Position numbers and translations under genes: made by a program | DNA from: Takakia lepidozioides | Taxonomy: Eukaryota > Plantae > Bryophyta | NCBI GenBank assembly: GCA_030704615.1 | Contig: CM060733.1 | Location: 41,478,001-41,542,000 of the forward strand | Reading direction: 5' to 3' | Length of the DNA stretch: 64,000 nucleotides | Notes under the pieces: generated by a model | Databases searched by the model: none | What the model saw: the letters and a program-made list of their open reading frames with translations, nothing else | What the model was told of the DNA's origin: nothing | Shown: in pieces, positions 1 through 26,827 of the stretch | How the letters are laid out: every line of letters starts with the position of its first letter | Position numbering within the stretch: the stretch's first letter is position 1

Positions 1-67
1 CCCCTCATGACAGGTAATTCGGCGCCATTTTTCCAGTGCATGTTCGGACTTAGCCAGTTTTCGGCGC
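1..67. repeat. Fragment of the same palindromic repeat family as 2.8-7.2 kb
   Basis: caggtaattcggcgccatttttccagt...gacttagccagttttcggcgcc matches the modules at 4130-7160 and abuts the truncated end of the transposase. Confidence 0.75.
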
Positions 68-1794
68 CCGTACACCCTTCGGATGGCAGCCCAATTTGCT
101 TGTGCGTTGTCCGCCATGAAACCACGGAAATTGGGAGGGGGCAATCCCGCCTTGGCCATCTGTTTGTTTATTCCCTGCCAAAGAAGCATCTCCGATTGTG
201 TGTCCTCTCCTTTCATCTCACAAATAGCAATTGTCATTAGCATCCTGCAGTGGGTGTCGTAGACATGTGCACCCATTGTCACCCACTGGTGATTTGTAAT
301 TCGCTTGATATGGTCGAACATGACCCAACTGTTTGACAAGTTCCCACTCGTCATCCTGTCGACCAGTTCGACGCCGCTGCCAGGTCCACACGTGGACATT
401 TTGAATACGAAACAACGATCTGCCTCAGTCCCTTGTCCTGGAAACCTACTTCCATGAATGTAGTCATATCCACATCGTCGCTTCACCTCCAGAATGGAGT
501 GCATATCCGAGCCACGCCCAATTTTCTGTTTGCATGAGACAATGTGGTTTCGGACATTCGGTGAACATACGTGGGACACCGACTCCAGCAATGCCTCCAT
601 TTCCTTCTCGTCGAGAGGAACTCTATCGGAGCCGTCTTCCGACATAATTCTAGCCAATGCCATCTTATGGGCGGCTTGGAGCTGTATCTATTTGGGTTTG
701 GCACCCGGTCTCAACTTAACCTCCTCCTGAACGAGCTGCTCTGCTTTGTGGGCAGCCTCCCGCGAGTTCCCCCTCGCCAATTTGTGACAATGGGAACCAA
801 CGTGTATGCAAGCTCGGGTGAGGTCAGGGAAACGGTGCAACACATAGAACTGCTTGGCATTACAAACAGACATGTAGTGTGGTGGTTCTTTGCAATGTGC
901 ACACTTAAATGTGGAGTTCGGAACCTTCTCCTGAGCTCGAAATGGTTGATGAGCTGTGCCTGTCCAATCGGTCTCGTTCCTGTGACCTCTGGATTTAAAG
1001 TGGAAGCAAGTTGGGGAGAAACACCGCAACGCGCCCGCACAAACAACGTAGCGCACCCGCACACAATCGAGCATCTTCATGTTGGTGGTTTTGGTAACGC
1101 ACCAAGGATGACCGTCATGTTTTCTATCCATATCTGTCAACATTCCGGACGCCCTCGAGTAGTCCGCCCGAGGAGGGAACTCAAAGAAGATATTACCGTC
1201 GACGTCGGCGGGAAGGCATGTAACCGATTTAATTGCAAACTTGCTGTAGTCCAGCCCGGCCAGCTCCGACCGGTGTCCCTCCAGGTGAAGCCCTCGCAGA
1301 ATTTCAAGAATAGATCGAACTGCGGTGCTCGTGCTGGGAATATGACTCCCTCCTCCACTGACGTCCATTGAGGACTTGCCTGATCTCCAGGACGACCTCG
1401 GAACTTCCATGACCTCATCTGAGTCGGACAGGTTGTGAACAACCCGGTTCTCGCTCGTCTTCATGGATGGGTTCGGCTCTGGATTTATTTCGTTGCGGAC
1501 TTCTCTATTTGAGGTAGCCACTCTCTGATTCGCGGATTGTTTCGTGGAAGGCGCCAGGATAGAAGGTGCATTTGGCGGGCAAATGAAGTCCCCAACAGCC
1601 ATGTATATGACGCTGTCCGATGGTGGAACTCGCCATTCCCTGCCATCGCCGAAATCATCGTGGAGCACAACAATACTCTCGACAACAAGGCCGTTTGAGT
1701 CCTTCCTTCCTCCTCCAAAAAAACCGACCCCGGTTTCACGTGGTATCGAACGCACAGATGTTTCTCCATCACCCGGCAGATGTCCCCTCTGCAC
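68..1794 (-). pseudogene. Mutator/MULE-type DDE transposase with N-terminal GCM/WRKY-like zinc finger; one in-frame stop, C-terminally truncated
   Basis: ORF 688..1794 has DGHPW..TKTTN..CAGALRC..C..CAHC..C..GSHCH. Manual read-through of the TAG at 688-690 gives ...WVMFDHIKRI...HVYD...TIAICEMKGED...LW...NFRGFMADNAQANWAAIRRVYG, i.e. the two catalytic Asp motifs of a MULE domain. The frame runs into repeat sequence at ~67, before the CxxH and Glu motifs. Confidence 0.75.
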
Positions 1795-2079
1795 GGAAAT
1801 GAAGCTCTATGCTCGTGAGGAGGGCAGTACACTGTAGCGCTCGGGTTCTCCGCCATGGGAGATGTGCACACAGACTGCCAGGATGGCGTGCGGGGAAGCT
1901 CCCTGGTAGAAGGGGGATGCAGCGATGGGAAGGAACGCGGTGCCGATTTGTCCAAGCGACGAAGCCTGATCCAAATCCTGGGAGCCAACTATCTCAAAAA
2001 TCCAGAGTCAGAGTGTTAATGAACCTTGTCACCGGAATGCGGCCCTGGTCTTTGCGCAATAACTGCCAACGGTATGCAG

Positions 2080-2790
2080 TCAGAAAGTGGGGGGCCGTCC
2101 GGATGATGACGGCTGAAGGGGAGAAGCCGGCACCGTGCCGTCACATTACTACCCCCGAATGGAAATTCGGCACCCAATATCCAACTGGGGAAGCCCGGAT
2201 GAAGTTGCCTCGGGCGCAGAGTCCGGCGCGTGTGCGACAGAGAACATCCCCTGGATGGAGATTCGGCGCCGAATTTCCATCCGGGCCCCCCCAAAGGAAG
2301 TCGTGTCGGGGGGTCAGGCCGAAAACTGGCCGGCATAAAAACATCCCCAGATGGAAAAACGGCGCCGAATTTCCATCCGGGGCGGTTCGGATGCACTCGG
2401 GGAGGGGGGAGAGGCCGGCACTTGGCCGTCACATTTCAACCCCCGGACGGAAATTCGGCACCGAATATCGAACAGGGGACGCCCGGATGAAGTCGCCTCG
2501 GGCGTAGAGGTCGGCACGTGTTCGACAGAGAGCATCCCCTGGATGGAGATTCGGCGCCGAATTTCCATCCGGGCCCTCCCAAAGGAAGTCGTGTCGGGGG
2601 GTCAAACCGAAAACTGGCCGACATAAAAACCTCCCCAGATGGGAAAACGGCGCCGAATTTCAATCTGGGGCCGTTCCAATGCAGTCGGGGAGGGGGGAGA
2701 GGTCGGCACCTGGCCGTCATATTTCAACCCCCGGACGGAAATTCGGCACCGAATATCCAACAGAGCGGCGGAGAGGCCGGCACCTCTCCG
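2080..2790. repeat. ~288-bp tandem repeat (~2.3 copies), probably subterminal repeat of the MULE
   Basis: ga(a/g)g(c/t)cggcac..gccgtca recurs at ~2123, 2411 and 2699; each unit carries several degenerate copies of the ggatggaaattcggcgccgaatttccatcc palindrome. Confidence 0.85.
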
Positions 2791-2799
2791 ACAGAGACC

Positions 2800-4130
2800 A
2801 TCCCCCGGATGGAAATTCGGCGCCAAATTTCCATCCCGCAGGTAAGTGCAATCCCGGATGGATGGAAATCCGGCGCCGAATTTCCATCCTGCAGGTAATT
2901 CGAATCCCGGATGGATGGAAATTCGGCGCCGAATTTCCATCCACCAGGTAAGTGGAATCCCGGATGGACGGAAATCCGGCGCCGCATTTCCATCCTGCAG
3001 GTAATTCGAATCCCCGATGGATGCAAATTCGGCGCCGAATTTCCATCCTGCAGGTAATTCGAATCCCGGATGGATGCAAATTCGGCGCCGAATTTCCATC
3101 CTGCAGGTAATTCGAATCCCGGATGCATGGAAATTCGGCGCCGAATTTCCATCCAGCAGGTAAGTGGAATCCCGGATGGATGGAAATCCGGCGGCGAATT
3201 TCCGTCCTGTAGGTAATCCGAAACCCCGATGGATGGAAATCCGGCGCCGAATTTCCATTCCGCAGGTAAGTCGGATCGCTGGCGTATGGATATTCGGCGC
3301 CGAATTTCCATTCACCAGGTATTTCATGGCTCAGAATTACCTTCCTGCAGGTAATTCTGATCTAAGAATTACCTTCCTGCAGGTAATTCTGATCGATGAA
3401 GGTAGGAAGGTAATTCCTCGCTCAGAATTACCTGCACGAAAGTAATCCAACGATCAGAATTACCTGCAGGAAGGTAATTCTGAGCGATGAAATACCTGGT
3501 GAATGGAAATTTGGCGCCGGATTTCCATCCATCGGGGTTTCGAATTACCTGCAGGATGGAAAATCGGCACCGGATTTCCATCCATCCGGGATTCCACTTA
3601 CCTGCTGGATGGAAATTCGGCCCCGAATTTCCATCCATCCGGGATTCGAATTACCTGCAGGATGGAAATTCGGCGCCGGATTTCCATCCATCCGGGATTC
3701 CACTTACCTGGTGGATGGAAATTCGGCGCCGGATTTCCATCCATCCGGGATTCCACGTACCTGCTGGATGGAAATTCGGCGCCGGATTTCCATCCATCCG
3801 GGATTCCACGTACCTGCTGGATGGAAATTCGGCACCGGATTTCCATCCATCCGCTTCGGAATTACCTGCGTGAGGGAAATTTCGCGCGCCGCCCTACCTG
3901 CGCGGATGGAAATCCGGCGCCGGATTTCCATCCATCCGCTTCCGAATTACCTGCATGAGGGAAATTTGGCGCGCCGCCCTACCGAATTTGCAGCGCCGAC
4001 TTACCTGGAGGATGGAAATCCGGCGCCGGATTTCCATCCATCCGCTCTTCGAATTACCTGCATGACAGAAATTTTACGCGCCGACTTTTTGGCGGATGGA
4101 AATCCGGCGCCGGATTTCCATCCATCCGCT
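2800..4130. repeat. Foldback array of ~53-bp units built on a 30-bp palindrome, with a global inversion centre at ~3400
   Basis: GGATGGAAAT(T/C)CGGCGCCG(A/G)ATTTCCATCC every ~52-53 bp; 3301-3362 is the near-exact reverse complement of ~3452-3512, and the unit linkers switch orientation across the centre. Confidence 0.92.
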
Positions 4131-6027
4131 CTTCGAATTACCTGCATGACTGGAAAAATGGCGCCGAATTTCCGATTTTGGTGCCAGTCAGATCTCGGAC
4201 TTATCCATTTCCGGCCCCGAACAAGAAAAACGGCGCCGAAAAAAAAAAAAAAAAAAAAAAAAAAACGCCATTTTTTTCATTTCGGGACCGAAAACGGCTA
4301 AGTCCCAAATCTGACTGTCACCAAAATCGGAAATTCGGCGCCATTTTTCCAGTCATGGAGGTAATTCGAAGAGCGGATGGATGGAAATCCGGCGCCGGAT
4401 TTCCATCCATCCGCGCTCCGAATTACCTGCATGATGGAAATTTTGCGCGTCGACCTACCTGGCGGATGGAAATCCGGCGCCGGATTTCCATCCATCCGCT
4501 CTTCGAATTACCTGCATGACTGGAAAAATGGCGCCGAATTTCCGATTTTGGTGCCAGTCAGATCTGGGACTTGGCCATTTTCGGCGCCGAACAGGAAAAA
4601 TAGCGCCGAAAAAAAAAACAAAAAAAAAAACGCCATTTTTCCAGTTCGGGGCCGAAAACGGCTATGTTCCAGATCTAACTGGCACCAAAATCGGATATTC
4701 GGCGCCATTTTTCCAGTCATGGAGGTAATTCGAAGAGCGGATGGATGGAAATCCGGAGTCGTATTTCCATCCATTCGCGCTCCGAATTACCTGCATGATG
4801 GAAATTTTGCGGGTCGACCTACCTGGCGGATGGAAATCCGGCGCCGGATTTCCATCCATTCGCTCTTCGAATTACCTGCATAACGGAAATTTTGCGCGCC
4901 GACTTACCTGGCGGATGGAAATCCGGCGCTGGATTTCCATCCATCCGCTCTTCGAATTACCTGCATGACTGGAAAAATGGTGCCGAATTTCCGATTTTGG
5001 TGCCAGTCAGATCTGGGACTTGGCCATTTTCGGCCCCCGAACAGGAAAAATGGCGCCGGAAAAAAAAAAAAAAAAAAAAAAAAAAACCATTTTTCGAGTT
5101 CTTGGCCGAAAACGGCTTAGTCCCAGATCTGAGTGGCACCAAAATCGGAAATTCGGCGCCATTTTTCCAGTCATGGAGGTAATTCGAAGAGCAGATGGAT
5201 GGAAATCCGGCGCCGGATTTCCATCCATCCGCGCTCCGAATTACCTGCATGATGGAATTTTTGCACGCCGACCTACCGGGCGTATGGAAATCCGGCGCCG
5301 GATTTCCATCCATCCGCTCTTCGAATTACCTGCATGACTGGAAAAATGGCGCCGAATTTCCGATTTTTGTGCCAGTCAGATCTGGGACTTGGCCATTTTC
5401 GTCCCCGAACAGGAAAAATGGCGCCGAAAAAAAGAAAAAAAAAGAGAACGACATTTTTTCAGATCGAGGCCGAAAACGGCTAAGTCCCAGATCTGACTAG
5501 CACCCAAAATCGGAAATTCGGCCCTATTTTTCCAGTTATGGGCCTAGTCAGATCTGGGACTTAGCCGTTTTCGGCCCCGAACTGGAAAAATGGCGCCGAA
5601 AAAAAAACAAAAAAAAAGCCATTTTTTCTTGTTTGTAGCCGAAAACGGCTAAGTCCCAGATCTGACTGGCACCAAAGTCGGAATTTCGGCACCATTTTTC
5701 CAGTCATGGAGGTAATTCGAAGAGCGGATGGATGGAAATCCGGCGCCGGATTTCTATATATCCGCGCTCCGAATTACCTGCATGATGGAAATTTTGCGCG
5801 CCGACCTACCCGGCGGATGGAAATTCGGCGCCGGATTTCCATCCATCCGCTCTTCGAATTACCTGCATGACGGAAATTTTCGCGCGCCGATTTTTTGGCG
5901 GATGGAAATCCGGCGCACTCTTCGAATTACCTGCATGACTGGAAAAATGGCGCCGAATTTCCGATTTTGGTGCCAGTCAGCTCTGGGACTTAGCCATTTT
6001 CGGCCCCGAACTGGAAAAATGGCGACG

Positions 6028-6071
<44 letters not shown>

Positions 6072-6923
6072 ACGCCATTTTTCTAGTTCGAGGCCGAAAA
6101 CGGCTAAGTCCCAAATCTGACTAGCACCCAAAATCGGAAATTCGGCGCCATTTTTCCAGGTCTGGGCCCAGTCAGATCTGGGACTTAGCCGTTTTCGGCC
6201 CCGAACTGGAAAAATGGCGCCGAAAAAAAAAAAAAAAAAAAAACCATTTTTCCAGTTTGGGGCCGAAAACGGCTAAGTCCCAGATCTGACTGGCACCAAA
6301 GTCGGAAATTCGGCGCCATTTTTCCAGTCATGGAGGTAATTCGAAGAGCGGATGGATGGAAATCCGGCGCCGGATTTCTATCCATCCGCGCTCCGAATTA
6401 CCTCCATGATGGAAATTTTGCGCGCCGACCTACCTGGCGGATGGAAATCCGGCGCCGGATTTCCATCCATCCGCTCTTCGGAGTACCTGCATGACGGAAA
6501 TTTTGCGCGCCGACTTTTTGGCGGATGGAAATCCGGCGCCGGATTTCCATCCATCCGTGCTCCAAATTACCTGCATAATGGAAATTTTGCGCGCCGACCT
6601 ACCTGGCGGATGAAAATCCGGCGCCGGATTTCCATCCATCCGCTCTTCGAATTACCTGCATGACTGGAAAAATGGCGCCGAATTTCCGATTTTGGTGCCA
6701 GTCAGATCTGGGACTTGGCCATTTTCGGCCCTGAACTGGAGAAATGGCGCCGAAAAAAAAAAAAAAAAAAAAACTCCATTTTTCCAGTTCGATGCCGAAA
6801 ACGGCTGAGTCCCAGATCTGACTAGCACCCAAAATCGGAAATTCGGTGCCATTTTTCCAGTTCTGGGCCCAGTCAGATCTGGGACTTAGCCATTTTCGGC
6901 CCCCGAACTAGAAAAATGGCGCG

Positions 6924-6961
<38 letters not shown>

Positions 6962-7160
6962 GTCATTTTTCTAGTTTGGGCCCCTGTCAGATCTGGGATT
7001 TAGCCATTTTCGGGGCCGAAAATGGCTAAATCCCTAGGGTGGCTGGCACCAAAATCGGAAATTCGGCGCCATTTTTCCAGTCATGCAGGTAATTCGAAGA
7101 GCGGATGGATGGAAATCCGGCGCCGGATTTCCATCCGCCAGGTAGGTCGGCGCGCAAAAT
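4130..7160. repeat. Tandem array of long hairpin modules with poly(A) loops, interleaved with the 30-bp palindrome
   Basis: Nine A-rich tracts (~4239, 4609, 5059, 5426, 5599, 6028, 6223, 6753, 6924), each framed by aaaaatggcgccg...(cg)ccatttt and longer inverted arms (cagatctgggactt / aagtcccagatctg). Confidence 0.92.
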
Positions 7161-7548
7161 TTGGGGGAGAAGATGGGGGAGAAGATGCAGAAGATTCCCA
7201 GGAGGTGAGGTGGACAGTCCCCCAAGAGGACGGGATTTTTGAGAGGCATAGTGGAACTGATGCATCACAAAGCTCGGAGGATGAGGGGGATGAGGGGGAT
7301 GAGGAAGAAGGTGGGGCAAGTTCCTCGGAGGGTGTAGGAGAGTAGTGCCCATTCCGGCTATGACAGTTAGAACACACTTGTATAGACGTGGCTTGCCACA
7401 AAATTTGCAATAAAATGTTGCATTTCAAGTCCACTGGTGCCACATTCCAACTTCACATGACCCTATTTCCGTGCCTCCTAACCCTATTTCCGTGGACTCA
7501 CAATGGTCTGCTCATGTTTTTTTTTTTTTCCGCTCATGCTCATGCCGT

Positions 7549-8976
7549 TCATGAAATAGCAGCCCCCGTAGTAGCAACAGGGTCAGCTACTTGCACATGC
7601 ACTTGTTGTGGTATTGGTACCACTGGCCCTTTTACCACTGACATCTCCTGCACCCCCTGCGAAGAAGACTGAAAAATTAGAGTTCTGGCATGTAAATAAG
7701 TAGTCATCAGCTGCTCCTCAGGAACAAAGACTCTTTTGTCAATATTTGAACTCAGGTCATCCACTTGAGTTTGCAGGCTTTCCACATCCTCCTGTAGCTC
7801 CGCTATTCTACTATAGACATTGTCTATAGTAGTTGTGGCAATGTTCTGCACCTGCAATCTGAGCTCATTCATCTCGCCCTGGGTGAGCTTCCTTGGTGCT
7901 TTGCCTTCTACCGGTCCTTGTGCTAACCAGACCTGCATAAGGTGGTTATCCACCAAGTCCTGTGTGGCACCCCTGAGAGTCTGCTCCTCCGTGAGTCTGT
8001 ACACATCTAACTGCTGCTGTAAAGCCTCCATGCGCTTCGCATGAGGTTCAACCAGACCCGCATAGGCAGCAGCCAGATTATTGGCTTCCTTCCAAGCCTT
8101 GTCAGCCACAGAGAGTTCATTTCTATTGACCATGACTGTTTGTTGCAACTCCAGGATGTACCTCTCCTGGTCAGCCTCAACCTGTTTGTATTGTTGGAAA
8201 GTTTTCTCATTGCGACAGATTGTAGCCTGCAAATCAACAATGAGTTTCCCTTGCTCTATTATCTCAGCTTCTGCCGTCATACATCTCTCCCCTTGTCTTT
8301 TAACTTCTAATGCAGTTTGCTCTAGAGTAGTTGTAAGTATAGCACATTGTATGGTCATCCTCTGATGTACTGCCTCCAACTCTATATGGAGTACATTCAC
8401 TTCTTGCAACTTGCCCTCATGCTTCACCTGTAATTGGTATAACTGTTGCTTATGTGCTTCATACAACTGGTCCTGCTCGAGACCTGCTTCAATCAAATGT
8501 CCCTTAGCCAACTGCAAGGCAACCTTTGCGTCCTCCAGCTCTTGCTATAACTTGAGATTGACCTCCTCATCCACCTTGTTAGCACACTCAGTGGCAATTC
8601 GAGTCTCAAACTCCTTCCTGAGTTCTTCCTTCAAAGCTGCCAATTGGGTAGATGGAACATGGGATTTCACATAAGTGCCCAACAAATTGAGTGTCCTACT
8701 TATGGAACTCGTAAGCATGGCCTGCTGGGGGTCATCATGGTGAACTTGTTGCTGTTCCCCCTGATCTTCCACAATGTAATGCTTCACCAACCATTCAGGC
8801 CATTGCCCCACCAAATCCTCTTCCTGAACCACCTCATCCTCCACAGGTGCTGCAGTGTTCTTAATTCTACCCCTGGTACCTCCGTCACAGGTGTGGGTAT
8901 TACATGCACAGCAGGGATTTCCCTGGATAAACTCTGCACCTCTGGAACCACTGATTCCCTTACCAAGCCAGAGTTT
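7549..8976 (-). pseudogene. Fragment of a second copy of the gypsy accessory coiled-coil ORF
   Basis: ORFs 7549..8517 and 8545..9084 are in one frame, separated by a TAG; closely similar to the ~11075-12475 part of ORF 10349..12622; cut at 8976 by an LTR. Confidence 0.9.
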
Positions 8977-9940
8977 TGTCGAGCGGCTTTTACTCAACCA
9001 TCCCTTCGCTATCCGAGGTGGGAACTCCAAGATAGAAGAGTTGGAAATCTCTAAGCACTCAGTCCGCTCAGAACAATCAGTCATGACCTACAGCTAGTGT
9101 ATCATGGGGGTGTTTTCTATTTGTATTCCTTCCCATATTCATGTTAGCTAGTTACCTTACTGTTGGTATTTAAGTATCAGATTGCTTCAGCAAACTATCG
9201 GATTCCATCAACTCATCCATTCATTCCACAGCTTCACTCAGATCTCTCTACACAATGTGAGTATGAAGTATGTATCAGATTAATATCTATCAAGTATCAG
9301 GCTGAAGCCATGGTGTCTCTAATCTGCTCTACATTACAACTCTACTGCTTGCATTCATCTGGCATCAACAGATCGTTCTCCTCCTACTCCGTGCTCTCCC
9401 TCTTTCTGCTCAGAGATGCGCTCTCCGCTTCATTTCCCAGAAGTGATGCCAGAAGTCATCCCAGAAGCGATCCTCCCCCCAGAAGTGATCTCCATAAGTC
9501 CCCGCTCTTGGCTTTATCTACCTACAAGCTGTTCTAACCGCTTCTCTAACTAACCGTCATCCCTGTAGTACGCGTTCCTTTTGCATATGCCGTTCCCTCA
9601 CAGTTGTTCCCCGCCAATGATAACTGTCCCCCAAGTTGTGCCGAGCCGGGACTGGCTGTGTAAGGCTGTGTCTGGCTGTGTCGACCATGCAAGGCTGTGG
9701 CGGGCTGTGACTGGCTGTGTCGGGCTGTGTCGGCTGTGCGAAGATGTGTCAGGCTGTGTCGGCTGTGATTGGCTGTGCCATGCTGTGTCGGGCTGTGTCG
9801 GGCTGTGTCGGGCTGTGTATCTCCCCCCTAAAGCCTGTTGATGTCACCCCTAAGGCTCCTGTTGGTCCCATTCTATGTAAAAATTAAGGGTACCCCACAG
9901 ATCCCGTAAAAGCTTCTAAGTCCCAAGCAGCCCTCTAACA
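8977..9940 (-). repeat. 3' LTR (964 bp)
   Basis: TG...CA ends; homologous to 17583..18285; adjacent PPT; internal GGCTGTGTC-type tract at ~9645-9817. Confidence 0.92.
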
Positions 9941-9979: not shown

Positions 9980-12900
9980 TTACTGTTTGGGATTAGCAAA
10001 CCTTTGTGAGCGAGCACCCTTCTGAGGTTGAGAGTCTCGTGTAGGACTCCGTGTGCGAGCCCGTGTCCTGTCACTGGTTGAGGGAGATGATTGAGCACTA
10101 CCTGGAAATGTCAGTCCCTCCTTTGGCTGATATCGAGGTAATCTCTCAGGCATAGGAGACCCCCGTCGCTTCTTCTCTGCCATCTGAATTGCATAGTCCT
10201 CTGGCATGTCAAAAGAGTCCGCTGAAGAACCAGTAGTATGAGAATCGTCTTCCCCCCTGAGGTGTTTTAACTGTCGAACTCTAACTGGAATCCTCTGGGG
10301 CATACAATGTGGTCCCACCATGTCTGGAAGTTTAATCTTTAAAACTTGTTATAAGCGCTGAATTGCAAAATGGGTGAAGACCCTGAACTCCTTGTCTGTA
10401 CAGATGAGTGGTGTGCCAATGACTTGAGAACAGTGCAAGTATTTCCATGCCTCATGTCCCTTAAAGAAAATATCGTCAGGCCCGAATTTCTGTGTTGACA
10501 AATTGTTCCAGGCTGAATGAAACCATGAACGAATTTGTGAATCCTTTTGCATCATAACTTTTGCCTCATATAGGTACATATGAGGTGGCACTGAAGGCAA
10601 GACCCAATGATCCCCACTAGAATAACTCAGAAAGCGCGATTGCATCTTCTGTTGCTCAATGTGATAACGTGCCAGAAAACAAGCAGCATAGTATAACCCG
10701 CAACCCATGACAATACTTGCTACCTCCTTGGTCTTGGTATAAATGTACCCATGTATAACTTGGAAGACAATTAATTCCTTCAACATGGTACTTGCCTCAT
10801 GCCAGTACCTCGCAAAGTGATGATCCTCAATGGGTCGATTGTTCGGAAGAACCTTAGTCCTAGTTGCCACTGGCAGCCAAATGCGCATGATCTGGTAGTA
10901 ATGTGCCAACGACTGTGGAAGACTAAATTCCTTCCAAACCAAATCCAACACAATGGGAATTTGGTTGAAGGGCATAATCATAGCTCGACTGTACTCCCGT
11001 GTAGCAGGAGTTTTAGGTGGGTTAAAAGCAGCATCCCCCCATACCTCCGGCTGTGGCGGTTGTGGTGGCTCTGGTGTGGCTGTAGTAACAACAGGGTCAG
11101 CTACTAACACAGTCACTTGTTGTGGTATTGGTAGCACTGGCTCTCGTACCACTGGCATCTCCGGCACCCCCTGCGAAGAAGACTGAAAAGCTAAAGTTCT
11201 AGCTTGTAAATAAGAAGCCATCAGCTGCTCCTCAGGTACAAAGGCTCTCTTGTCAATATTTGAAGTCAGGTCCTCCACTTGAGTTTGAAGGCCGTCTACA
11301 TCCTCCTGTAGCTCTGCTATCCTACTATAGACATTGTCTATAGTAGTTGTGGCAATGTTCTGCACTTGCAGCCTGAGCTCATTCATCTCGCCTTGGGTGA
11401 GCCTTCGTGGTGCTTTGCCTTCCACCGGCCCTTGTGCTAACCAGACCTGCATAAGGTGGTTATCCACCAAGTTGCTTGTGGCACCCCTGAGAGTCTGCTC
11501 CTCTGTGAGCCTGTACACATCTATCTGCTGCTGTAAAGCCTCCATGCGCTTCGCATGAGGTTCAACCAAACTCGCATAGGCAGCTGCCAGATTATTGGCT
11601 TCCTTCCAAGCCTTGTTAGCCACAGAGAGTTCATTTCTATTTACCATGTGAGTTTGTTGCAACTCCAGGATGTACCTCTCTTGGTCAGCTTCAACCTGCC
11701 TGTATTGCTTGAAAGTATTCTCGTTGCGACAGATCGTATTCTTCATATCAATAATGAGTTTCGTCTGCTCGAGATTATCGGCCTGTGCCTTCATACATCT
11801 TTCCGCTTGGTTGTTAACTTCTAATGTAGTTTGCTCAAGCGTAATTGTGAGTGTAGCACATTGTATGGCCATCCTCTCATGTACTGTTTGCAACTCCGTA
11901 TGTAGTGCATTCACTTCTTGCAAGTTGCCCTCATGTTTCACCTGCATCTGGTATAACTGTTGGTTATGTGCTTCGTGCAACTGGTCCTGCTCGAGGCCTG
12001 CTTCAATAAAATGTTCCTTGGCCAATTGCAAAGCAGCTTTTGTACCCTCTAACTCTTGCTGTAACTTGAGAGTGACCTCCTCATTTGCACACTCAGTGGC
12101 AAGTCGAGCCTCAAACTCCTTCCTGAGTTCCTCCCTCAAAGCTGCCAATTGGGTAGTTGGAACATGGGATTTGACATAAGTGCCCAACAAATTAAGTGTC
12201 ATGCTTATGGAACTCATAAGCATGGCCTGTTGAGGGTCATCATGGTGAGCTTGCTGTTGTTCTCCCTGATCCTCAACAGTGTGATGCCTCACGAACCATT
12301 CAGGCCATTGTCCCACCAGATTTTCTTCCTGAACCACCTCATCCGCTACAGGTGCTGTAGTGTCTTGACATTCTACCTGTGGTACCTCCGTCACAGGTGT
12401 GGGTATTACAACAACAGCAGGGTTTCCCCTGGACAACCGCTGTACCTCCGGAATCACTATTTCCCTGACCAAGTTTGAATTTTCATAGAGAAGGACCACC
12501 CTTCTCAATTTCGGCCACGACCTGCTCTGTAGTTGGTATGTCCAACCTTTCTCCTTCCAGAGCAATTGGTGGTGATGCCACAACATATAGTAATTGTGGA
12601 GCCTCCAAAACAACAGAGTCAATTGGTTGTGGTGGCTGTGACATCGAAGTGACTTCCTCCTCCCTCTCTGAAGGCCCTGCTTCCAATGATAGCAGCTCTA
12701 TGTGTTGTTGTGCCCCTTCCTGCACAAGAGCTTGGGAAACATTATCATGCGGTTTCCGTGAAGCCAGTGGATCCGCCACTACAGTCTTTCCCCTCCTCTG
12801 TCTCTTAGATTGGGGTTGCACTGCTAGTCCACCCTCACTATGTGAAGAGCCTTGCTCTTCAACTGCAGTGATTTCTGTTTCAAACACTCCCATCTCCTTT

Positions 12901-13538
12901 CTCTCCCGAGTATCAAATATGCAAGAATCAAGAATTATTTGAGCAATGATTGGACCAGACACAATGATTGGAGACTTTGCAGTAGTGCCCTGTAACCTCT
13001 TCATCTCGTCCACCAATCCGTTGTACATTAATTCCGCCCAACCGACATCCTCTCCCCTCAAAGCTTTCAGGATCTCCTCTGTGAAGGACCTGCTCAAATA
13101 CTGTTGGTTCTGTTTCATGGCAAATAGAACATTCAAGATTTGGCCAACCTCCCTAAGCCCTGGGCACTTGGCTTTGGTACAAGCAAAACCTTGAGTTTTA
13201 AAGAAACTCCCTTCTTGGAATAAATTTCCTATCTGCAATCTTGCCCTGTGCTCATCCACCTCCACATGTCCTGATGGCAAATCAAACAGTTGCTGCAGGT
13301 ACTGGGGAGTATTTTCTATATCTACTCCCCTCACCTGAGTAACTCATGTCCGAGGCTCAAAGTTTTGAAGAAATTGTATCATGAACTGCCGATGATGCAA
13401 GGACCAGTCCTTGCATAGCAATCCCTCCAATCGCAGCTCCTTCAGTAGCTGCACCGCCTGTGGTGCAGCGATTGTTTGTTTCTGTAAAATTGTGGTGCTT
13501 TTCACCCTGATATCTTCCATTCCTCTCACTCTCTTCAT
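9980..13538 (-). pseudogene. Gypsy accessory (env-position) ORF, ~1,180 codons: Athila-ORF/Transposase_32-like N-terminus, long coiled coil, aromatic-rich C-terminal domain
   Basis: 13344..13661 and 12483..13334 are in frame across a TGA; frameshift near 12483; 10349..12622 and 9980..10321 are in frame across a TAA. Motifs QFLQNF...VRGVDI...LFDLP and GEDVGWAELM...GPIIAQII. Confidence 0.75.
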
Positions 13539-14224
13539 TCTGGACAAACAGACAGGTTTTGGTTGCAACAATTGAAGAAACGCCTGCAGGGCACAAAACA
13601 TAAAAGTATGGTTGGCGCAGAATGCAATGGGTAAGTGCTTGTAAGCCTGTGGGGCTTGCAAGTGTCGACTTAGAGAAAATGTGCTCTCTGGTCGTTTGTC
13701 CTTGTGCCACTGCGTAAGTAGTAAGGCTATAGCTTTGATTGTCTCTCCCGTCGAGACGCCCGTTACTTGGAACGACGCCGACTCTTGCGCTCAGAATCCC
13801 TCCAATTTCTTGATTTCGCTTCTTGGAAAATACCTTCTGCACGTAATTCTGGCTCATGATTGGCTGTTGGCTGTGTGATTGGTTTTGTAATTTAATTCCC
13901 TTCCATGGATTTTCCACTATGGACTGTCCACTAGGATAGCACATGTGACATGGATTTCGCTTTTCGGTACTTTTAAAGGGTTCCGTTACCCCATCCCTGT
14001 ATGCATTAATGGGCCCATAATAAGTTAATGTGTCGGGTAGGTACTTTGACGGCCAGTTTTGTCTTCTTTCTTGATGACACCCGTTCTTGTACTTCATGTC
14101 CGGCTGTGTGTCTCGCCCTGGCGTCCACGTGTCCATTTCTAAACATGCCTCCATCCACTTTTCCGCTCGCCACTCTCCGGATGCTAACCCACGTCCACCT
14201 GTCACTAATCTTATGGATTGTGTA

Positions 14225-14355
14225 ACCCCAGTAGGCTGTGTTGAGCTGTGACAGGACGTGTCATACTGTGGTACGTTGTGATAGGCTGTGTCACGCTGTG
14301 ATGGGCTGTGATAGGCTGTGTCGCGCCGTGATGGGCTGTGATAGGCTGTGTCGCG
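14225..14355. repeat. 30-bp-period GGCTGTG-rich tandem repeat between pol and the accessory ORF
   Basis: gataggctgtgtc(a/g)cgc(t/c)gtgatgggctgt, about three copies; same core as the LTR tract. Confidence 0.85.
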
Positions 14356-14469
14356 CTTGTACTGCCCGTCTTGGTCATATACGCTCGGCCTAGCGACAAG
14401 TGCTCCATACCCCGTTGGTATCACTAGCGCAGCCCGTGACTGCTTCCGCGTTTCAACATGCAAATCGTG

Positions 14470-16221
14470 CTACAATGGCTTGTCATGGATACCACTGTAC
14501 CCCTTCAATTTATTGGCATTGACTCTTCCCAGCATCTCTTTGTTAATGGTTTGTAACATGGCGGTGTTGTTATCATACATCTTCTGTATGACATAAGGTC
14601 CTTTCCATGGTGATTTAAGCTTAGAAGCTTTAATCTTACCCTTCTTCTGCAACCACAAAACCAAATCCCCCGTCTTAAAAGTCTTTAACTTCCCTTCATC
14701 AAACTGGTCCTTCCTCTTCATTTGAATTCTGGTCATATTGTCAGCTGCATCAGCTCGTACTTCTTCCACATGGTATAATTCATGTTTCCTGACCTTAATT
14801 GAATCTTCCAATTCCATTCTTCTTCCCCATTCAGTTCTCATAGTAGGTAACAAGAACTCCACTGGAAGTAAAGCTTCCATACCATAAACTAATTGGAATG
14901 GTGTATACTTAGTGGTGACTTTATATAAAGTCCTGTATGACCACAAAGCTGTCAGCAGCTTTGTATCCCAATCTGTTCTGTTCGCATTGACTATCTTAGC
15001 CAAGATGGTACATAGTATTTTGTTGGTAGCCTCTGCCTGTCCATTACCCTGTGGGTAATAGGTTGTACTCTTTCTATGCACAATCGTGAACTCCTTAGTT
15101 AAGAGTTCTATGGTCTCATTGATGAAGTGACTTCCCTGGTCACTGATAAATTCCAGGGGACAACCAAATCGTGTAAGTATGTTCTCATACAAGAACCTGG
15201 CTGTGGACTTAGCTGTGTTGTCCCTCAGTGCTTTAGCTTCCACCCACTTCGTAGTATAATCAGTGGCTGTGATTATATACTTGTTCTGTGTATTCTTGGC
15301 TGGTGGGTTTATTGGTCCAACAAAGTCCAGTCCCCATTTTTGAAATGGTTCAGTAGGCATCGTAGGATGCAAAGCCATCTTTCCAGATCTCTGCAATGGT
15401 CCTAACCTCTGACACTCATCACAAGTTTTACAGTACTTGTGTACATCCTTGAACAAAGTAGGCCACCAGTACCCGACAAGTAATATCTTCCTACTGGTAG
15501 TCTCTTCTCCAAAATGGCCTCCTGCCACTCCTTTATGAACTTCCTCCAAAACTTTATTTACTTCATGGTGGTACAAGCATCGCTTCAGCACTCCATCTGG
15601 TCCTAGCTTATACATTTTGTTCCCTATCATTGTATAAGGTAAAGCCTTGATAACAATTCTCTTCCTCTGCTCCTTTCCATAACTTGGTGGGTACTGACCA
15701 TGAGTAAGGTAGTATCTGATTGGCCACTGCCAATCTAACCATTCATTTGCACTTCCTTGCACCTCCATTACAAATAAACTGGCATCAGGTAATTGATCGT
15801 CTACTCCTGTGGCGGCCTCTCCCGTTGTTAGTCGTGACAAATGATCTGCCACAAGATGCAAATGGCCAGGCTTGTAAACAACTTCGAACTCAAACTCGTG
15901 CAAGATTATTAACCACCTCGCTATCCTTCCACTTATCAAAGGCTTGCTCACCAGATATATCAAAGCCTGATGATCCACATAAAACATAAACTTTCTTCCC
16001 AATAGGTAATGCCTGAATTTCTTGACTGCATAAATCATTGCTAGTGCTTCTCTTTCAGTTGTGCTATAGTTCATTTCAGCACTGTTCATCAACCTGCTAG
16101 CATAGTACACAGGTGAATCTATATTTCCTGTAACATTTTGGGCTAACACCGCTCCCAACGCTTCTCCTGAGGCATCACAGTGAACATGAAATACTACATG
16201 CCAGTGAGGGTTAATTAGCAC
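14470..16221 (-). CDS. Gypsy pol: RNase H + integrase
   Basis: CDAS, NYSTTEREAL, DHQAL, ADHLSR; GGHFG...CDECQ; WGLDF, SDQGSHF, YYPQGNGQAE; GPY motif. Confidence 0.96.
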   Translation of the reverse strand: MLINPHWHVVFHVHCDASGEALGAVLAQNVTGNIDSPVYYASRLMNSAEMNYSTTEREALAMIYAVKKFRHYLLGRKFMFYVDHQALIYLVSKPLISGRIARWLIILHEFEFEVVYKPGHLHLVADHLSRLTTGEAATGVDDQLPDASLFVMEVQGSANEWLDWQWPIRYYLTHGQYPPSYGKEQRKRIVIKALPYTMIGNKMYKLGPDGVLKRCLYHHEVNKVLEEVHKGVAGGHFGEETTSRKILLVGYWWPTLFKDVHKYCKTCDECQRLGPLQRSGKMALHPTMPTEPFQKWGLDFVGPINPPAKNTQNKYIITATDYTTKWVEAKALRDNTAKSTARFLYENILTRFGCPLEFISDQGSHFINETIELLTKEFTIVHRKSTTYYPQGNGQAEATNKILCTILAKIVNANRTDWDTKLLTALWSYRTLYKVTTKYTPFQLVYGMEALLPVEFLLPTMRTEWGRRMELEDSIKVRKHELYHVEEVRADAADNMTRIQMKRKDQFDEGKLKTFKTGDLVLWLQKKGKIKASKLKSPWKGPYVIQKMYDNNTAMLQTINKEMLGRVNANKLKGYSGIHDKPL

Positions 16222-17400: not shown

Positions 17401-17582
17401 TGGTTTCCTCTTCCAATTGGTGTTGCTGTCACTACACCACACAGATACCTTTTAAACAACTTAGGCCTTCTAGCTGCATCTCTGCAACCTGTTCCCACTC
17501 TGGGTGTGCAGTGAACAGAGTAGCTTCTTGTTCCTCATCCAGTCCTCCCATCCAATCATACTCCTTGACCCCTCGAGGTCTT

Positions 17583-18285
17583 TGTCGAGCGGCTTTTACT
17601 CACCCATCCCTTCGCTATCCGAGGTGGGAACTCCAAGATAGAAGAGTTGGAAATCTCTAAGCACTCAGCCCGCTCAGAACAATCAGTCATGACCTACAGC
17701 TAGTGTATCATGGGGGTGTTTCCTATTTGTACTCCTTCCCACATTCATGTTAGCGAGTTACCTTACTATCTGCAATTAAGTATCAGTTGCTTCAGATTTC
17801 TATAATAACTAACCGTCATCCCTGTAGTACACGTTCCTTTTTCAGATGTTGTTCCCCCACCGTCGTTCCTTGCCAATGATAACTGTTCCCCAGCTGTGCC
17901 AAGCTGTGACTGGCTGTATCAGGCTGTGGCGGGCTGTGACTGGCTGTGTCGAGCTGTGTAGGGCTGTGCGAAGCTGTGGCTTCTGTATCAGGCTGTGACT
18001 GGCTGTGTTGGGCTGTGTCGACTGTGCGAAGCTGTGACGACTGTGTCTGATTGTGTCGGCTGTGTCGGCTGTGTCGGACTGTGACGGGCTGTGTTGGCTG
18101 TGCGAAGCTGTGACGGGCTGTGTTGGACTGTGATGGGTTGTGACGGACTGTGTCGGGCTATGTATCTCCCCCCTAAAGCCTTTTGTTGTCACCCCTAAGG
18201 CTCCTATTGGTCTCAGTCTGTGTAAAAATTAAGGGTACCCCACAGATCCCGTAAAAGCGTCTAAGTCCCAAACATCCTTCTAACA
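17583..18285 (-). mobile_element. Solo LTR of the same gypsy family inserted in pol between PR and RT
   Basis: TG...CA ends, homology to 8977..9940, perfect 5-bp TSD GTCTT (17578-17582 and 18286-18290). Confidence 0.95.
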
Positions 18286-18887: not shown

Positions 18888-19595
18888 TTACTTACCAGCC
18901 AAAGTCCCTTCATTACTTTGCATGTCTGCAGCTTCTTTCTTCCCTTCATCCTCACTCACTTCCTCTTCTCCTTCAAAATCAGAGGAATCTGCCATAGGAA
19001 TATCAGTACTCTTCTGCATTTCCCTTATGGTATCGGCCACCTCCTTGTGCACTTCCTTCTCATCTCTCCAAGCCTCATCATCTTGAGGCACCTCACTGCC
19101 ATCTTCATTATCACCATCTTCCTCAACTACTGGAGGTATTAGTTTGGCTTTGCTTCTTGTTACTATCAATGTACTCACTTCTGGTACAACACATGGCCTA
19201 ACCATGTGAGCTGCCACCACTGGGCCCTCATTCACAGAAGCTCTCATCTCATTCTGGTGTCTAATCCCGAATGAACAGGCTGCCTTGCGATGTCCTGGCT
19301 GATTACAATAGTAACACAGTTCTTCACCATTGGGTCCTCGCGGGTCTGCTCTAGGATTATTTCTATAATCCTGATTCCCTGTCTGGTAACTCCCCCTTGG
19401 ATTACCCTGATAGTTGCCTCTGGAATTCCCTTGGTAATTCCCTCTTGAATTACCTCTCCCTTCCATGCCATTGTTATAACCACCAGGCCTACCATAGTGG
19501 TCCTGATCACTGTTTCTTCTTGGCTGGGGTTGCACTTGATGCACCCTTACTTGCCTAGGTTCTCTTGCAGCTGTCCTTCTGTTGTAGTAACAATT
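18888..19595 (-). pseudogene. Gypsy gag C-terminal part with CCHC zinc knuckle
   Basis: CYYCNQPGHRKAAC preceded by (GNSRGNYQ)-like repeats; N-terminus missing. Confidence 0.88.
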
Positions 19596-19599
19596 CTCA

Positions 19600-22500
19600 G
19601 TAGAAGGAGGCGGTGCCAAGACTTGCAAGGTAAACAACTACTCTTGTGAGTTGTATCAGGAAACTGGCGCCTTGCGTAAAGGGAGTCAGTTAATGTTTGT
19701 GAGTGGGATAATCTCCGGAACTAACATGTCGTTGTTGGTGGACACATGAGCGTCGCACTCCTTCATGACACCGGCAACGACACGGAAGTTGGGACTCCCG
19801 ACAAGTGATGTGGGGGCCTCTATTGAGGTGCGTTCTGCGAAAGGAGAACCACAATTGGCGATGAGGTTGGCGTTTGATGTTCCTCTTCAGCTCGGGAGTT
19901 GGGAGGGACGTGAGAACTTCACCATTTGCGAGATCGATGGAGTGGATCTCATTTTGGGGATGACCTTTTTTAGCAGATCCGGAGTGGTCATAGATGGCCA
20001 CAAGAGAGTAGTCACGCTACCGTGTGGGAATGGTGACGAAGTTTTACGAGTGTCGGAAATGCCCAACCCCGTGGGAGGGTGAATAAACCTTCTGTCAGCA
20101 AAGGAGTGGGCCGTGGAGGAGTCACACGAGCCCCAATTTTTGCTTTATGTAAGACAAGTGAAGGGAGAAGGCGATGGGGAGCCGATTGGATCAAGGGGAT
20201 TTTGGAGAAATACGAGGATGTGATGCCGGAGGATTTACCAAGCGGCTTGCCACCGCGAAGGGGAGTTGACCACAAGATTGAGGTGATACTGGGATCGGAG
20301 CCGCCTGCCAAGGCGCCCTACTGGTTGAGCCACAGAGAGTTTGTCGAGCTGAAGACTCAGCTCAAGGATCTAATGTCAAAGGGGTACATTCAGCCGAGTA
20401 AGTCACCTTACGGAGCCCCGGTGCTATTCGCAGACAAGAAGGATGGGACGCTGCGGATGTGTGTCGACTACAGGGCTCTGAATTAGGTGACTATCAAGAA
20501 CCGGTACCCTTTGCCAAGAATCGACAACCTCTTCAATCAGTTGGCAGGAGCGAAGTATTTTAGCCGAATTGATTTGCGCTCCGGCTACCATCAAATCCGA
20601 GTGGCGGAAGGAGATGAGGAGAAAACCACGTGCATGACAAGATATGGCTTGTATGAGTTCTTGGTGATGCCTTTTGGACTCACCAACGCACCCGTGACCT
20701 TTAGCACGCTGATGAACAGCCTTTTCCAGGAGTGGCTAGATGACTTTGTGATCGTGTACATCGACGACATCTTGGTATACTCGAAAACAAAGGAGGAGCA
20801 CCTGAAGCACCTCAAAAGGGTGTTCCAGAAATTGTGGGAAGGGAAGCTGTATGCCAAAGCTTCAAAGTGCGAATTCGGGGTCACAAAAGTGGAGTTCCTG
20901 GTGCATGTGATTACATAGGATGGGATGAAAATGGATGACAGAAAGGTGAGGGCGATCTTGGACTGGGAGCCTCCGACTTTGGTCCCGGGAGTGCGATCCT
21001 TCCTAGGACTCGCATCCTATTACCGGAAGTATGTGAGAAATTTTGCCAAGATCGCGGGGCCGCTGTCAGACCTTCTGTGTAAATCGTATGGAACACCTTT
21101 TGTGGTCAAGCTTTTGCCGAGTTGAAGCAGCGGATGGCGGAATCTCCAGTCTTCAAAATCCCGGAGTTCGACCGTCATTTGAGATTCATACGGATGCGTC
21201 GGACTTCGCTATAGGGGGTGTACTCATGCAGGATGGACGTCCAGTGGCTTACGAAAGTAAGAAACTGAATGAAGTAGAGCGATGGTGGCCTACGCATGAG
21301 AAGGAAATGAAGGCGGTGGTGCATTGCCTTGAGCTTTGGCACCACTATGTTGGTTCTAACCTGGTGAAGGTGTTCACGGACAATGTCACGGTGAAGTATT
21401 TTGCCACGCAGCCTAAGTTGTCCCCAAAACAACTTAGGTGGCAAGATACTTTGGCGGTCTTCAACGTGGATATCCAGTACAAACCGAGACGAGACAATGT
21501 GGTGGCCGATGCTTTAAGTAGAAAACAACAGCTTATATTAGTGTACAGGGGCGAGACGGCGCTCCAAAGGAAGATCCAGAAGGCTTACCGGAAGGATGAG
21601 ATAGCGAAGTCCGTGATGCGGGACTTGAGGATGGGGGTTAAATCGTAGTTCTACTTGCAAAATGGACTGCTCCGGTATAAGCAAAAACGTCTCTACGTGC
21701 CGAGATAGTCTCTTGAGAGAATGCCATGATGGCCCACTTGCGGGCCACGGCGGAGCCAAACGCACCGCGGCACTCTTGAAGAAAGAGTATTTCTGGCCCA
21801 AACTGAGGGAGGAGGCCGAGGAGTATGTCAAGACATGCACCACATGCCAACAAAACCGGAGCGAACACAAAAAGCAAACGGGGCTGTTACAACCCTTGCC
21901 GATTCCAGAGGGGTCTTGGGAAAGTGTCTCGATGGATTTCATGACTGCTATGCCGCTGTCAAAAGGATTCAATGCAATCATGGTGGTGGTGGATAGGTTC
22001 AGTAAAATGGGCCATTTCATCCCCACCAAGGAGACGACAACGACACAGGAGACGGGGCGACTTTACTTTGCCCACGTCTTCAAGCATCATAGACTCATGA
22101 AGGATATTGTCTCGGACCGCGATCCAAAGTTTACGAGTAAATTTTGGAGGGCACTTTGGAAGAAGATGGGGACGAGGCTCGAGATGAGCACCGCCTTCCG
22201 ACCTACGACAGATGGCCAAACGGAAAGGGTGAATTCCGTGGTGAAGCAGATCTTGCGGAATTACGTGTCGGCGGACCAATCGAACTGGGTGGAGCACTTG
22301 GACGCGGCAGAGTTTTGTTATAATAACACAAAACACTCCGCAACGGGTGTTTCCCCTTTCGTATTAGTCTATGGAAAAGCACCTCTAGTGCCGACAAGTT
22401 GGGCTGCCCAAGACGTTGAGGAACCGGCAACAACAGCGGTGTTGGAGGAACGCGAGCGCTTGTTGAAGCTCGCAAAGTACAACATCGCCAAAGCTAGGAA

Positions 22501-23030
22501 ACGGTATGAACGGCAGGCAAATCGGAAGCGGAGGGAAGTCAAGTTTGAGGCAGGCATGGAGGTCTGGTTGAACATCAAGAATTTTCGACTACCTCCAGAA
22601 GTGAGTCCAAAGTTCGTACCTCCGTATGCGGGACCCTTTTACATCCGGAAGGTTATGAATGAGGATGTGTATGAATTGGAGCTGCCGGCAAACAACAAGG
22701 TGCATCCGGTATTCCACGTTTCTTTTTTGAAGCCTTACTTCAAAGATGAAGCGCGTCCGAATCGGCATCAAGTGTTGCGTCCGCCACCTGTGCTGTTGGA
22801 TCATGAAAATGAACCTGAGTACGAGGTGGAGGCAGTGCTTAAGTCGAGGAGGTAAAAGAATCGAGAAACGGAGTATCTCGTGAAATGGAAGGGCTATCAT
22901 CATGTGAAGGTATCTTGGGTATGTGCCTCAGAATTGGAAAACGCATCCGAGGCGGTTGCAGCTTTCGAATGGCGACCTCAAAAGTGGAAGAAGCATTGAT
23001 GGGGATATCAACCTTGGATCGTGGGGAGCC
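19600..23030 (+). mobile_element. Chromoviral Ty3/gypsy pol (PR-RT-RH-INT-chromodomain), decayed, lacking gag and 5' LTR
   Basis: LLVDT*ASHSF; [24 protein letters not shown]; TDASDFAIGG; GHGG..CTTCQ, SMDF, SDRDPKF, TDGQTER, GPF; chromodomain YEVEAVLKSRR*..EYLVKWKGY..SW. Several stops and frameshifts. Confidence 0.95.
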
Positions 23031-25900: not shown

Positions 25901-26341
25901 CTCTGCGCCAGAGCTACGACCGAACTGCGACTGCTATGCGACGTCCCCTGGAGGCAGCAACGCCCGTGCAATTCCCCCACTTCGCAGCGGCTTCTTCTCC
26001 TGCCAAGATGGCCGCCCTTCTCTCCCCTTCTTTCTCCCCTTCGTGAAGGCGCCTGATCGGCGCCGAGGTTTGCTGGCGGGGTCGCCACACTGGCGTGCCC
26101 GCGGCTGCACCGGCCACCTTCTCAATCTGATCTCTCTCTCCCCTCCTCCCTCCCCTCCTCCATCCATCCTACTTTGTTTTTTTTGTTCTCTAGCTCTCCC
26201 GGGCGCAACTACCCCGCAGCCACTGGAGCATTTTTTTCCTGCGGCGGGTGACGCAGCGCTAACGCGCCACGGCGTTCAACCCCTCGCACCCCTCGCACTC
26301 TCTCTCTCTCGGCCCCTATTCTCTCTCCCTCTTCTCCCTCT

Positions 26342-26800
26342 TTCTTGCTGCAGTTCTCTGGTGGCCGTTGGGGGTTGGGGTTGTTGGGGGCGGAGGGGGG
26401 GGGGGGGGGGGGGGGGGGAGGTGGGGGGGGGTGTGGGGGGGGGGGGGTTCTTGCTGCAGTTCTCTGGTGGCCGTTGGGGGTTGGGGTTGTTGGGGGCGGA
26501 GGGGGGGGGGGGGGGGGGGGGGGGAGGTGGGGGGGGGTGTGGGGGGGGGGGGGGGGGGCGGGGCGCGGGGGGGGGGGGGGGGGGGGGGGGGGGAAGGGGG
26601 GGGGGGGGGGGGGGGGGGGAGGTGACTGAGACCAAAGTGATAAGGAAAGGAAACAAAAAACAACCAGGAGGGAAGAGACAAATCAACACCCCCACCCCCC
26701 AACACCCCACCACCACACCCCCACCACACCCCCCTCCCCCCCCAACTTACTTGTACAGACCCCCCCACCCCCCCCCCCCAAACCCCCCCCCCCAACAGTC
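26342..26800. repeat. Poly-G then poly-C low-complexity tract with a ~107-bp tandem duplication
   Basis: ttcttgctgcagttctctggtggccgttgggggttgggg... at ~26342 and ~26449; G runs longer than 20 nt. Confidence 0.9.
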
Positions 26801-26827
26801 CCTCTCTCTCCCTCTCTTCCACATCCT

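Follow-up and report, generated by a model that had tools for sequence, protein, structure and literature searches.

Does the long repeat array beside a transposase gene of the moss Takakia lepidozioides form the terminal region of that transposon and the binding platform of its zinc finger? The question is raised by a stretch of 64,000 nucleotides (GenBank assembly GCA_030704615.1, contig CM060733.1, positions 41,478,001 to 41,542,000 of the forward strand; hereafter the window), at whose left end an interrupted minus-strand transposase gene adjoins a hairpin-forming repeat block of ~5 kb (about 2080-7162). The original prediction had described a foldback-type Mutator system, in which a transposase with a GCM finger is accompanied by an array of GCM-like octamers. 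Our analysis leads to another answer: the region is probably a dead copy, with a locally expanded native palindrome cluster, of a Mutator-like DNA transposon that is very abundant. The array is best read as the internal palindrome cluster of the family, grown by tandem and inverted duplication, and the palindrome, not the ACCTGCAT octamer, would be the candidate cis-site of a sequence-specific protein encoded by the element.

Palindromes of the array and of intact relatives

The array (sub-arrays A to E, Table 1) is built around a 30-bp palindrome (P30, GGATGGAAATTCGGCGCCGAATTTCCATCC), of which the window holds 35 copies with at most three mismatches and 38 with at most five, all confined to 2253-7136 and with none expected by chance. 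P30 is 95% conserved across the 17 units of 53 bp, compared with 85% for the spacer. Tandem Repeats Finder (TRF) reported periods of 288/96, 53, 85 and 364/454 bp. Moreover, the segments 2961-3400 and 3414-3853, with 13 nt between them, are 86% complementary, and the predicted DNA fold of this foldback (2961-3853) reaches -450 kcal/mol (z = -60).

The ACCTGCAT octamer occurs 25 times in the window (3.0 expected), and 17 of these copies fall within 3949-7090, 16 on the plus strand and one on the minus strand at 7083, in agreement with the 15 or more copies counted before. Since the octamer is one position of the 85-bp repeat unit, its count is no independent evidence for a binding site. Within the array it is restricted to sub-array E, and the part contiguous with the transposase, 2118-2806, lacks it, which argues against its role as a GCM-like site; the motif ACCTGC has a count of zero in sub-array A, and the canonical GCM site (A/G)CCCGCAT has no match in the array on either strand. 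In the 17 units of 53 bp, the two bases that match octamer positions 6-7 are the most variable of the whole unit. The abundance of a second motif, ACCTGCAG, had been overstated, as it was found only nine times, in every case inside 2807-3810.

Four intact relatives (L001-L004) were compared, with 10-kb flanks where the contig allowed, and palindrome clusters accompany the transposase at three of them, which bears out the proposed association of repeat and transposase. L001 carries six copies of a 32-bp palindrome of the AGGAACTGCTTTCGGAGCAGAAAGCAGTTCCT type, L002 two copies of a 40-bp palindrome, and L004 nine copies of a AGATGAACACCAGCTCGAGCTGGTGTTCATCT-type palindrome, each inside a 146-bp palindromic unit. 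Every one of these palindromes is found on the upstream side of the transposase gene, at a distance of 1.7-8 kb, and none downstream, and no pair of terminal inverted repeats (TIRs) bracketing the gene was found within 10 kb at any of the four loci. This one-sided arrangement speaks against an origin of the array by amplification of the element's terminal region, or of a foldback TIR. Element-specific upstream palindromes are a recurrent, non-universal trait of the family, and sub-array A, with P30 matches at 2253, 2349, 2541 and 2733, is their counterpart in the window. An exact search for P30 in metagenome contigs of the Joint Genome Institute (JGI) gave no match. Two small close relatives, P0033 (no DNA) and P0002 (1.3-kb contig), gave no usable locus comparison.

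Further observations concern the surroundings of the relatives and the spacing of the sites. A conserved minus-strand gene without a Pfam match (L003:2171-3790 and L004:315-1937; identity 31-37%, lowest E 5e-32) sits 6-8 kb upstream of the transposase and may belong to the element as an accessory gene. Four metagenome contigs with decayed transposase matches share a single palindrome, TGAATGACATCC...GGATGTCATTCA, at a distance of 2-3 kb downstream of these matches (L013:12630-12661, L014:5572-5603, L016:13259-13289 and L017:13259-13289). The short start-to-start spacings of P30 in the window (53, 74, 85, 96 and 106 bp) correspond to 5.0, 7.0, 8.0, 9.1 and 10.0 turns at 10.6 bp per turn; its long spacings (217, 279-285 and 448-539 bp) do not match whole helical turns. 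The palindrome spacings of L001 (235, 250 and 802 bp) and L004 (255 and about 455 bp) do not match whole turns either, and helical phasing was dropped as a sign of function.

The transposase gene and its GCM-like zinc domain

The minus strand of 691-1794 and of 1-687 encodes two in-frame pieces of an open reading frame (ORF), split by a TAG codon. An exhaustive phmmer search with the second piece (1-687) recovered 450 relatives (best E 1.2e-45), and the homology ends at residue ~209 of this piece, which is window position ~61-63. The best hit, P0001, used as query, led to more than 200 proteins of about 700-760 aa, to which both window pieces align in register and for which a cluster look-up gave neither a Pfam domain nor a name. 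A word-indexed homologue search with the 368-aa piece came back empty, probably a length-window effect, as the P0001 query gave full-length relatives. The ORFs of the relatives all stop just after the motif RYRQWGGFM, and at L001-L004 this motif is followed by a second ORF of about 460-500 aa (289 aa in L003). The break is likely an intron, at which public gene calls split the family; the loci L001:10001-13810, L002:10001-13804 and L004:10001-13766 are split there. The second-exon ORF of L001 gave a weak match to the SWIM domain (PF04434; E 0.0025, 17.8 bits, under the cut-off of 19.6 bits), and the window copy is truncated ahead of this part. Relatives sit on plant-like contigs (Copia, DUF4216) and also occur in JGI metagenome contigs, and the sequence itself is present in a run labelled 'plant metagenome'.

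Pfam gave no match for either window piece at E up to 1 and none for 10 relatives at 0.01. A feature search in the ESM Atlas with P0164:430-737 returned clusters of Mutator-like elements (MULEs) as 29 of the 30 named neighbours (scores 0.89-0.91), and the conserved FDH ... MADxAQANW ... CxFHW pattern presumably resembles the pattern of MULE and hAT transposases. Because the MULE model of Pfam misses the core, yet its language-model neighbours are almost all MULEs, we call the transposase Mutator-like and place it in a divergent clade, an assignment of the core that rests on these neighbours and on the motif pattern. The ESM Atlas search with the 368-aa piece gave zf-CCHC neighbours only, with weak scores (0.83), and was disregarded.

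The zinc domain comprises about 120 residues, and the family has 12 conserved Cys/His columns, at two of which the window copy deviates. It was modelled with AlphaFold2 from an alignment of 96 zinc domains, and the model of the window domain reached a mean predicted local distance difference test score (pLDDT) of 91.3; a single-sequence model (pLDDT 38) was unusable. Foldseek placed the GCM domain 1odh_A first among 350,542 PDB chains (E 6.7e-3, probability 0.99, TM-score 0.36/0.46), followed by NAC domains. VIA-align against 48,161 representative chains had 1odh in second place (Z 5.6, 129/157 residues), with WRKY33 (Z 5.3), WRKY1 (4.4), AFT2 (4.1) and WRKY4 in the other top rows. A sequence profile of the 96 domains retrieved nothing related from the PDB sequences at E up to 10, and the GCM profile PF03615 matched neither the window pieces at E up to 1 nor, at E up to 10, any of 22 sequences (20 relatives and the two window pieces). 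Accordingly, of the predicted Mutator transposase with a GCM finger, the Mutator-like architecture and the WRKY-GCM1 fold are supported. The predicted structures support a GCM-like finger at the fold level only, through a match that is modest but specific. Identity to 1ODH is 10-12% (root-mean-square deviation 4.4-7.2 A), so that the DNA specificity of GCM cannot be carried over.

The state of this copy was evaluated with contigs from sequencing runs of the same organism, placed on window positions 1-6000. They give thousands of variant pieces over 66-2400, and their summed depth in run X2, which reflects abundance only roughly and gives no copy number, is uniformly high in the bins of 1-2400 (ORF, 5' spacer and start of sub-array A; about 480,000-680,000), about 310,000-400,000 over 2401-2800 (the rest of A) and lower in sub-arrays B to E. 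In run X5, the stretches 1803-2085 and 2056-2185 are bridged by contigs whose depth equals that of the ORF. We were thus able to show that the transposase family is very abundant in the genome. Ahead of position 66 the contig consensus reads CCTTGCCTTCCATGGGAACATTGGGGTCTT, the reverse complement of which gives ..DPNVPMEGK.. in frame and fits the family motif GDxxxPMxxRERTC; other genomic copies therefore continue the ORF where the window copy turns to repeat DNA. The repeat DNA on this side, which had correctly been assigned to the same family as the array, includes 16-37, 100% identical to nine places in the array, and 46-70, which matches the arms of hairpin modules. In other contigs 1-65 runs into CCAAAAAAG and then into 4330 onward, so that position 65 is no natural module end either; in contigs, position 4989 joins position 1 across 14 letters. 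The flank had been taken for a second terminus of the element, a view that fails on this breakpoint, at which the interior of a repeat module meets mid-ORF sequence.

Position 875 has T where the genomic consensus has C, so that Tyr replaces a conserved Cys of the zinc domain (codon 874-876), and at 1065, where the consensus has C (Gly), the window copy encodes Cys, with the loss of a conserved Gly (codon 1063-1065). The window copy is dead: a TAG interrupts it at 688-690, conserved residues have undergone private changes, and it is cut at 65/66.

Runs X6 and X7, labelled as two other organisms, contain 99%-identical short contigs over 66-622, at a depth far under that of their own long contigs, and one of them ends in an Illumina adapter. 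These contigs probably reflect cross-run contamination by a very abundant repeat and were not used as evidence.

Table 1. Features of the transposase gene and the adjoining array (window coordinates).
Feature	Position	Strand	Remarks
Repeat-family fragment (hairpin-module sequence)	1-65	no strand	Joined to the middle of the transposase ORF; rearrangement breakpoint
Transposase fragment, first part of the putative catalytic core (motifs MFDH, FMADxAQANW)	66-687	-	Cut at codon ~208 of the piece
In-frame TAG stop within conserved region	688-690	-	Pieces on either side align with the family in register
N-terminal part of the transposase with the WRKY-GCM1 / GCM-like zinc domain (core about 769-1134)	691-1794	-	Family alignments
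Gene 5' end (decayed) with upstream spacer	1795-2117	-	In-frame stops upstream of 1794
Sub-array A: 288-bp unit x2.2, palindromic sites per 96 bp	2118-2806	no strand	TRF; adjoins the transposase
Sub-array B: 53-bp unit x9.8 (P30 and 23-bp spacer)	2807-3325	+	Left arm of the foldback
Sub-array C: foldback centre, 32-bp AGAATTACCTTCCTGCAGGTAATTCT-type units	3326-3492	no strand
Sub-array D: mirror of B, 53-bp units in reversed order	3493-3853	-	Right foldback arm
Sub-array E: 85-bp units (P30 and AATTACCTGCAT spacer) alternating with nine hairpin modules	3811-7162	no strand	TRF periods 85, 364, 454

Proposed expansion of the array and alternative explanations

The anatomy of the array suggests how it may have grown. 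One site context continues from 2764 into the first 53-bp unit, and the mirror order of the units in B and D holds unit by unit. Sub-array A thus runs into B without a break and D mirrors B, which argues for an expansion in place, in tandem first and then in inverted orientation. In the hairpin modules of sub-array E the loops are rich in A, and the arms, which reach 142 nt, pair at 84-98%; the module 4090-4412 has a predicted fold of -149 kcal/mol (z = -24), and the final unit is inverted, the arms of 7009-7162 being turned relative to 4438-4591.

In the scenario that we propose, the element would have encoded a transposase with an N-terminal WRKY-GCM1 zinc domain, an RNase-H-type core and a second exon, which in intact relatives gives the weak SWIM match. 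It would have started from a native palindrome cluster upstream of the gene, where intact relatives have a few to nine copies of an element-specific palindrome of 30-40 bp; this cluster is represented here by sub-array A with its 96-bp spacing. A 53-bp unit would then have been duplicated in tandem, and the resulting array duplicated in inverted orientation, giving the foldback with arms of 440 nt. The 85-bp units and the hairpin modules may have been amplified later, and one more rearrangement would have brought repeat DNA up against mid-ORF sequence at 65/66. The array at this locus would accordingly be what slippage, unequal exchange and hairpin-driven duplication have left behind, and no working platform.

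Several points weigh against the region being a dead element with an expanded native cluster. The MULE model PF10551 and the other Pfam models matched none of the 22 sequences at E up to 10. L003 shows no repeated palindrome, so that the trait is present in only three of the four intact relatives, and the decayed relatives from moss-associated metagenomes (L006-L019) have no repeated palindromes. No element termini were found at any locus, and an internal position of the palindromes is likely, not proven. The DNA to the left of window position 1, including the left end of the element, lies outside the view, and the contig depths measure abundance only coarsely. The 15 metagenome loci with relatives of the catalytic piece are decayed fragments without palindrome arrays and say little either way.

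The original prediction itself, an amplified TIR of a Foldback-type Mutator element in which the finger binds ACCTGCAT as a GCM-like site, now appears improbable. It draws on a GCM-like fold that is real, on the repeat DNA to both sides of the ORF, on an octamer one base off ACCCGCAT, and on the precedent of Mutator/Foldback elements with composite TIRs made of tandem repeats (Tm1, PMC3169594). The octamer, however, is missing from all four sub-arrays A to D, its equivalent positions are the most variable of the 53-bp units, the true GCM consensus does not occur and the sequence identity to GCM is 10-12%; the left-hand flank is a breakpoint within a module, beyond which other copies continue the ORF, and the relatives show neither two-sided palindromes nor a TIR pair. 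Nor does the array have the two inverted tandem-repeat termini of a Foldback-type element, being one-sided, with the 2961-3853 foldback in its interior. A satellite or foldback repeat without any protein partner, in which hairpin or cruciform DNA drives slippage, inverted duplication and correction within palindromes and a transposase fragment has merely been trapped, seems to us rather unlikely, although it would account for the extreme self-complementarity of the array, its higher-order periods, the joints that vary in length among genomic copies and the death of the copy. It leaves unexplained that in other genomes, too, independent relatives have palindromes at the same position upstream of the same gene, of the same size class but with sequences of their own, and that the summed depth in the bins of sub-array A is comparable to that of the ORF.

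More weight, if still with doubt, may be given to the possibility that the palindromes are parS-like sites for an accessory protein of ParB-like/DNA-methyltransferase type, which would mark or shield the element while the finger reads something else, the accessory gene having been lost from this copy. A perfect 30-bp dyad is a more natural target for a dimeric helix-turn-helix binder than for a WRKY-GCM1 domain, the sites of which are typically short and asymmetric, and algal transposons with ParB-methyltransferase accessory genes, proposed to bind and modify their own element, have been described (PMC12477816). Against it, no ParB or methyltransferase domain was detected among the 79 window ORFs of at least 105 aa, nor among 82 ORFs of at least 85 aa within 10 kb upstream of L001-L004, three of which have palindromes, though short exons could escape both searches.

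Under the reading that we prefer, that of a dead transposon copy with an expanded native cluster, the palindromes could be read by a multimer of the GCM-like domain of the transposase or by an accessory protein such as a ParB-methyltransferase; a transposase finger, an accessory binder and no binder at all receive roughly equal weight from us. Tentatively, the 30-40-bp palindromes might be operator-like sites read by a protein of this bryophyte Mutator clade itself, either a dimer of the GCM-like domain or a binder that travels with the element, with site and protein co-evolving and helically phased arrays (53, 74, 85, 96, 106 bp) serving self-recognition, self-activation or anti-silencing.

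Surroundings of the element and comparison with known systems

The rest of the window is rich in transposons, and ORFs for Gypsy-type reverse transcriptase, RNase H and integrase fill much of it. To the right of the array, Gypsy-type blocks are duplicated with 82-91% identity (7568-8977 and 11082-12483; 8956-9940 and 17562-18285). Pol ORFs extend over 10349-16221, a gag-like ORF with a zinc knuckle lies at 18888-19637, and a second integrase and a further reverse transcriptase lie at 21662-22855 and 45357-46466, respectively. A tandem array with steps of roughly 10 bp (26332-26630) inside the ORF 26043-26858 probably explains the lone 'Hexapep' match of the window ORFs in Pfam.

The layout of MULE transposases has been described as a WRKY-GCM1 domain, a catalytic core and a SWIM domain (Babu et al., 2006; PMC1702500). 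The family studied here resembles them in its predicted domain order (WRKY-GCM1, RNase-H-type core with D...D motifs, and a candidate SWIM domain in the downstream exon of relatives), in its plant host and in its very high copy number. It differs in that no match to the Pfam models MULE, FAR1, DBD_Tnp_Mut or GCM was obtained, and in a large zinc domain whose shape is nearer to that of GCM than to the short WRKY/FAR1 versions. GCM itself, a transcription factor of animals, recognizes its asymmetric octamer as a monomer. Both it (1ODH) and the domain of the family are multi-zinc beta-sheet domains, whereas the GCM octamer is not present in the window array.

The Foldback elements of the Mutator type (FB of Drosophila and Tm1 of root-knot nematodes; PMC3169594) likewise combine a transposase of the Mutator superfamily with modular tandem repeats that fold back, but theirs are two inverted termini with 9-bp target duplications, whereas the inverted duplication in the window is internal to a one-sided array. 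Since WRKY-GCM1 fingers have already been described in Mutator elements, and repeats of the foldback type are known as well, the window copy is no new kind of system. The interest lies in the family, a very abundant clade of plant transposases that Pfam misses, with a GCM-shaped zinc domain and with upstream palindromes that change among intact members. The element Sola1-1 of Ectocarpus, with a ParB-like/DNA-methyltransferase accessory gene for which binding to and marking of its own element were proposed (PMC12477816), belongs to a different superfamily (Sola1), and such an accessory gene was not found among the window ORFs or upstream of the four relatives. For copies of AtMu1, a preprint reports self-activation by their own transposase (bioRxiv 10.64898/2026.08.24.746577).

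The closest parallel in outline is offered by the VANDAL MULEs, in which the targets of the anti-silencing protein VANC are short motifs, repeated in tandem and different from one related element to the next (Hosaka et al., 2017; PMC5735166). In both, element-specific motifs are multiplied in tandem in non-coding parts of a MULE; VANC motifs, however, are short and non-palindromic, and VANC is a separate protein, for which no similar gene was seen here. If a protein of the element does read the palindromes, the family would represent a second independent case, after VANDAL and VANC, of private pairs of transposon protein and site, and would provide a natural source of orthogonal DNA binders.

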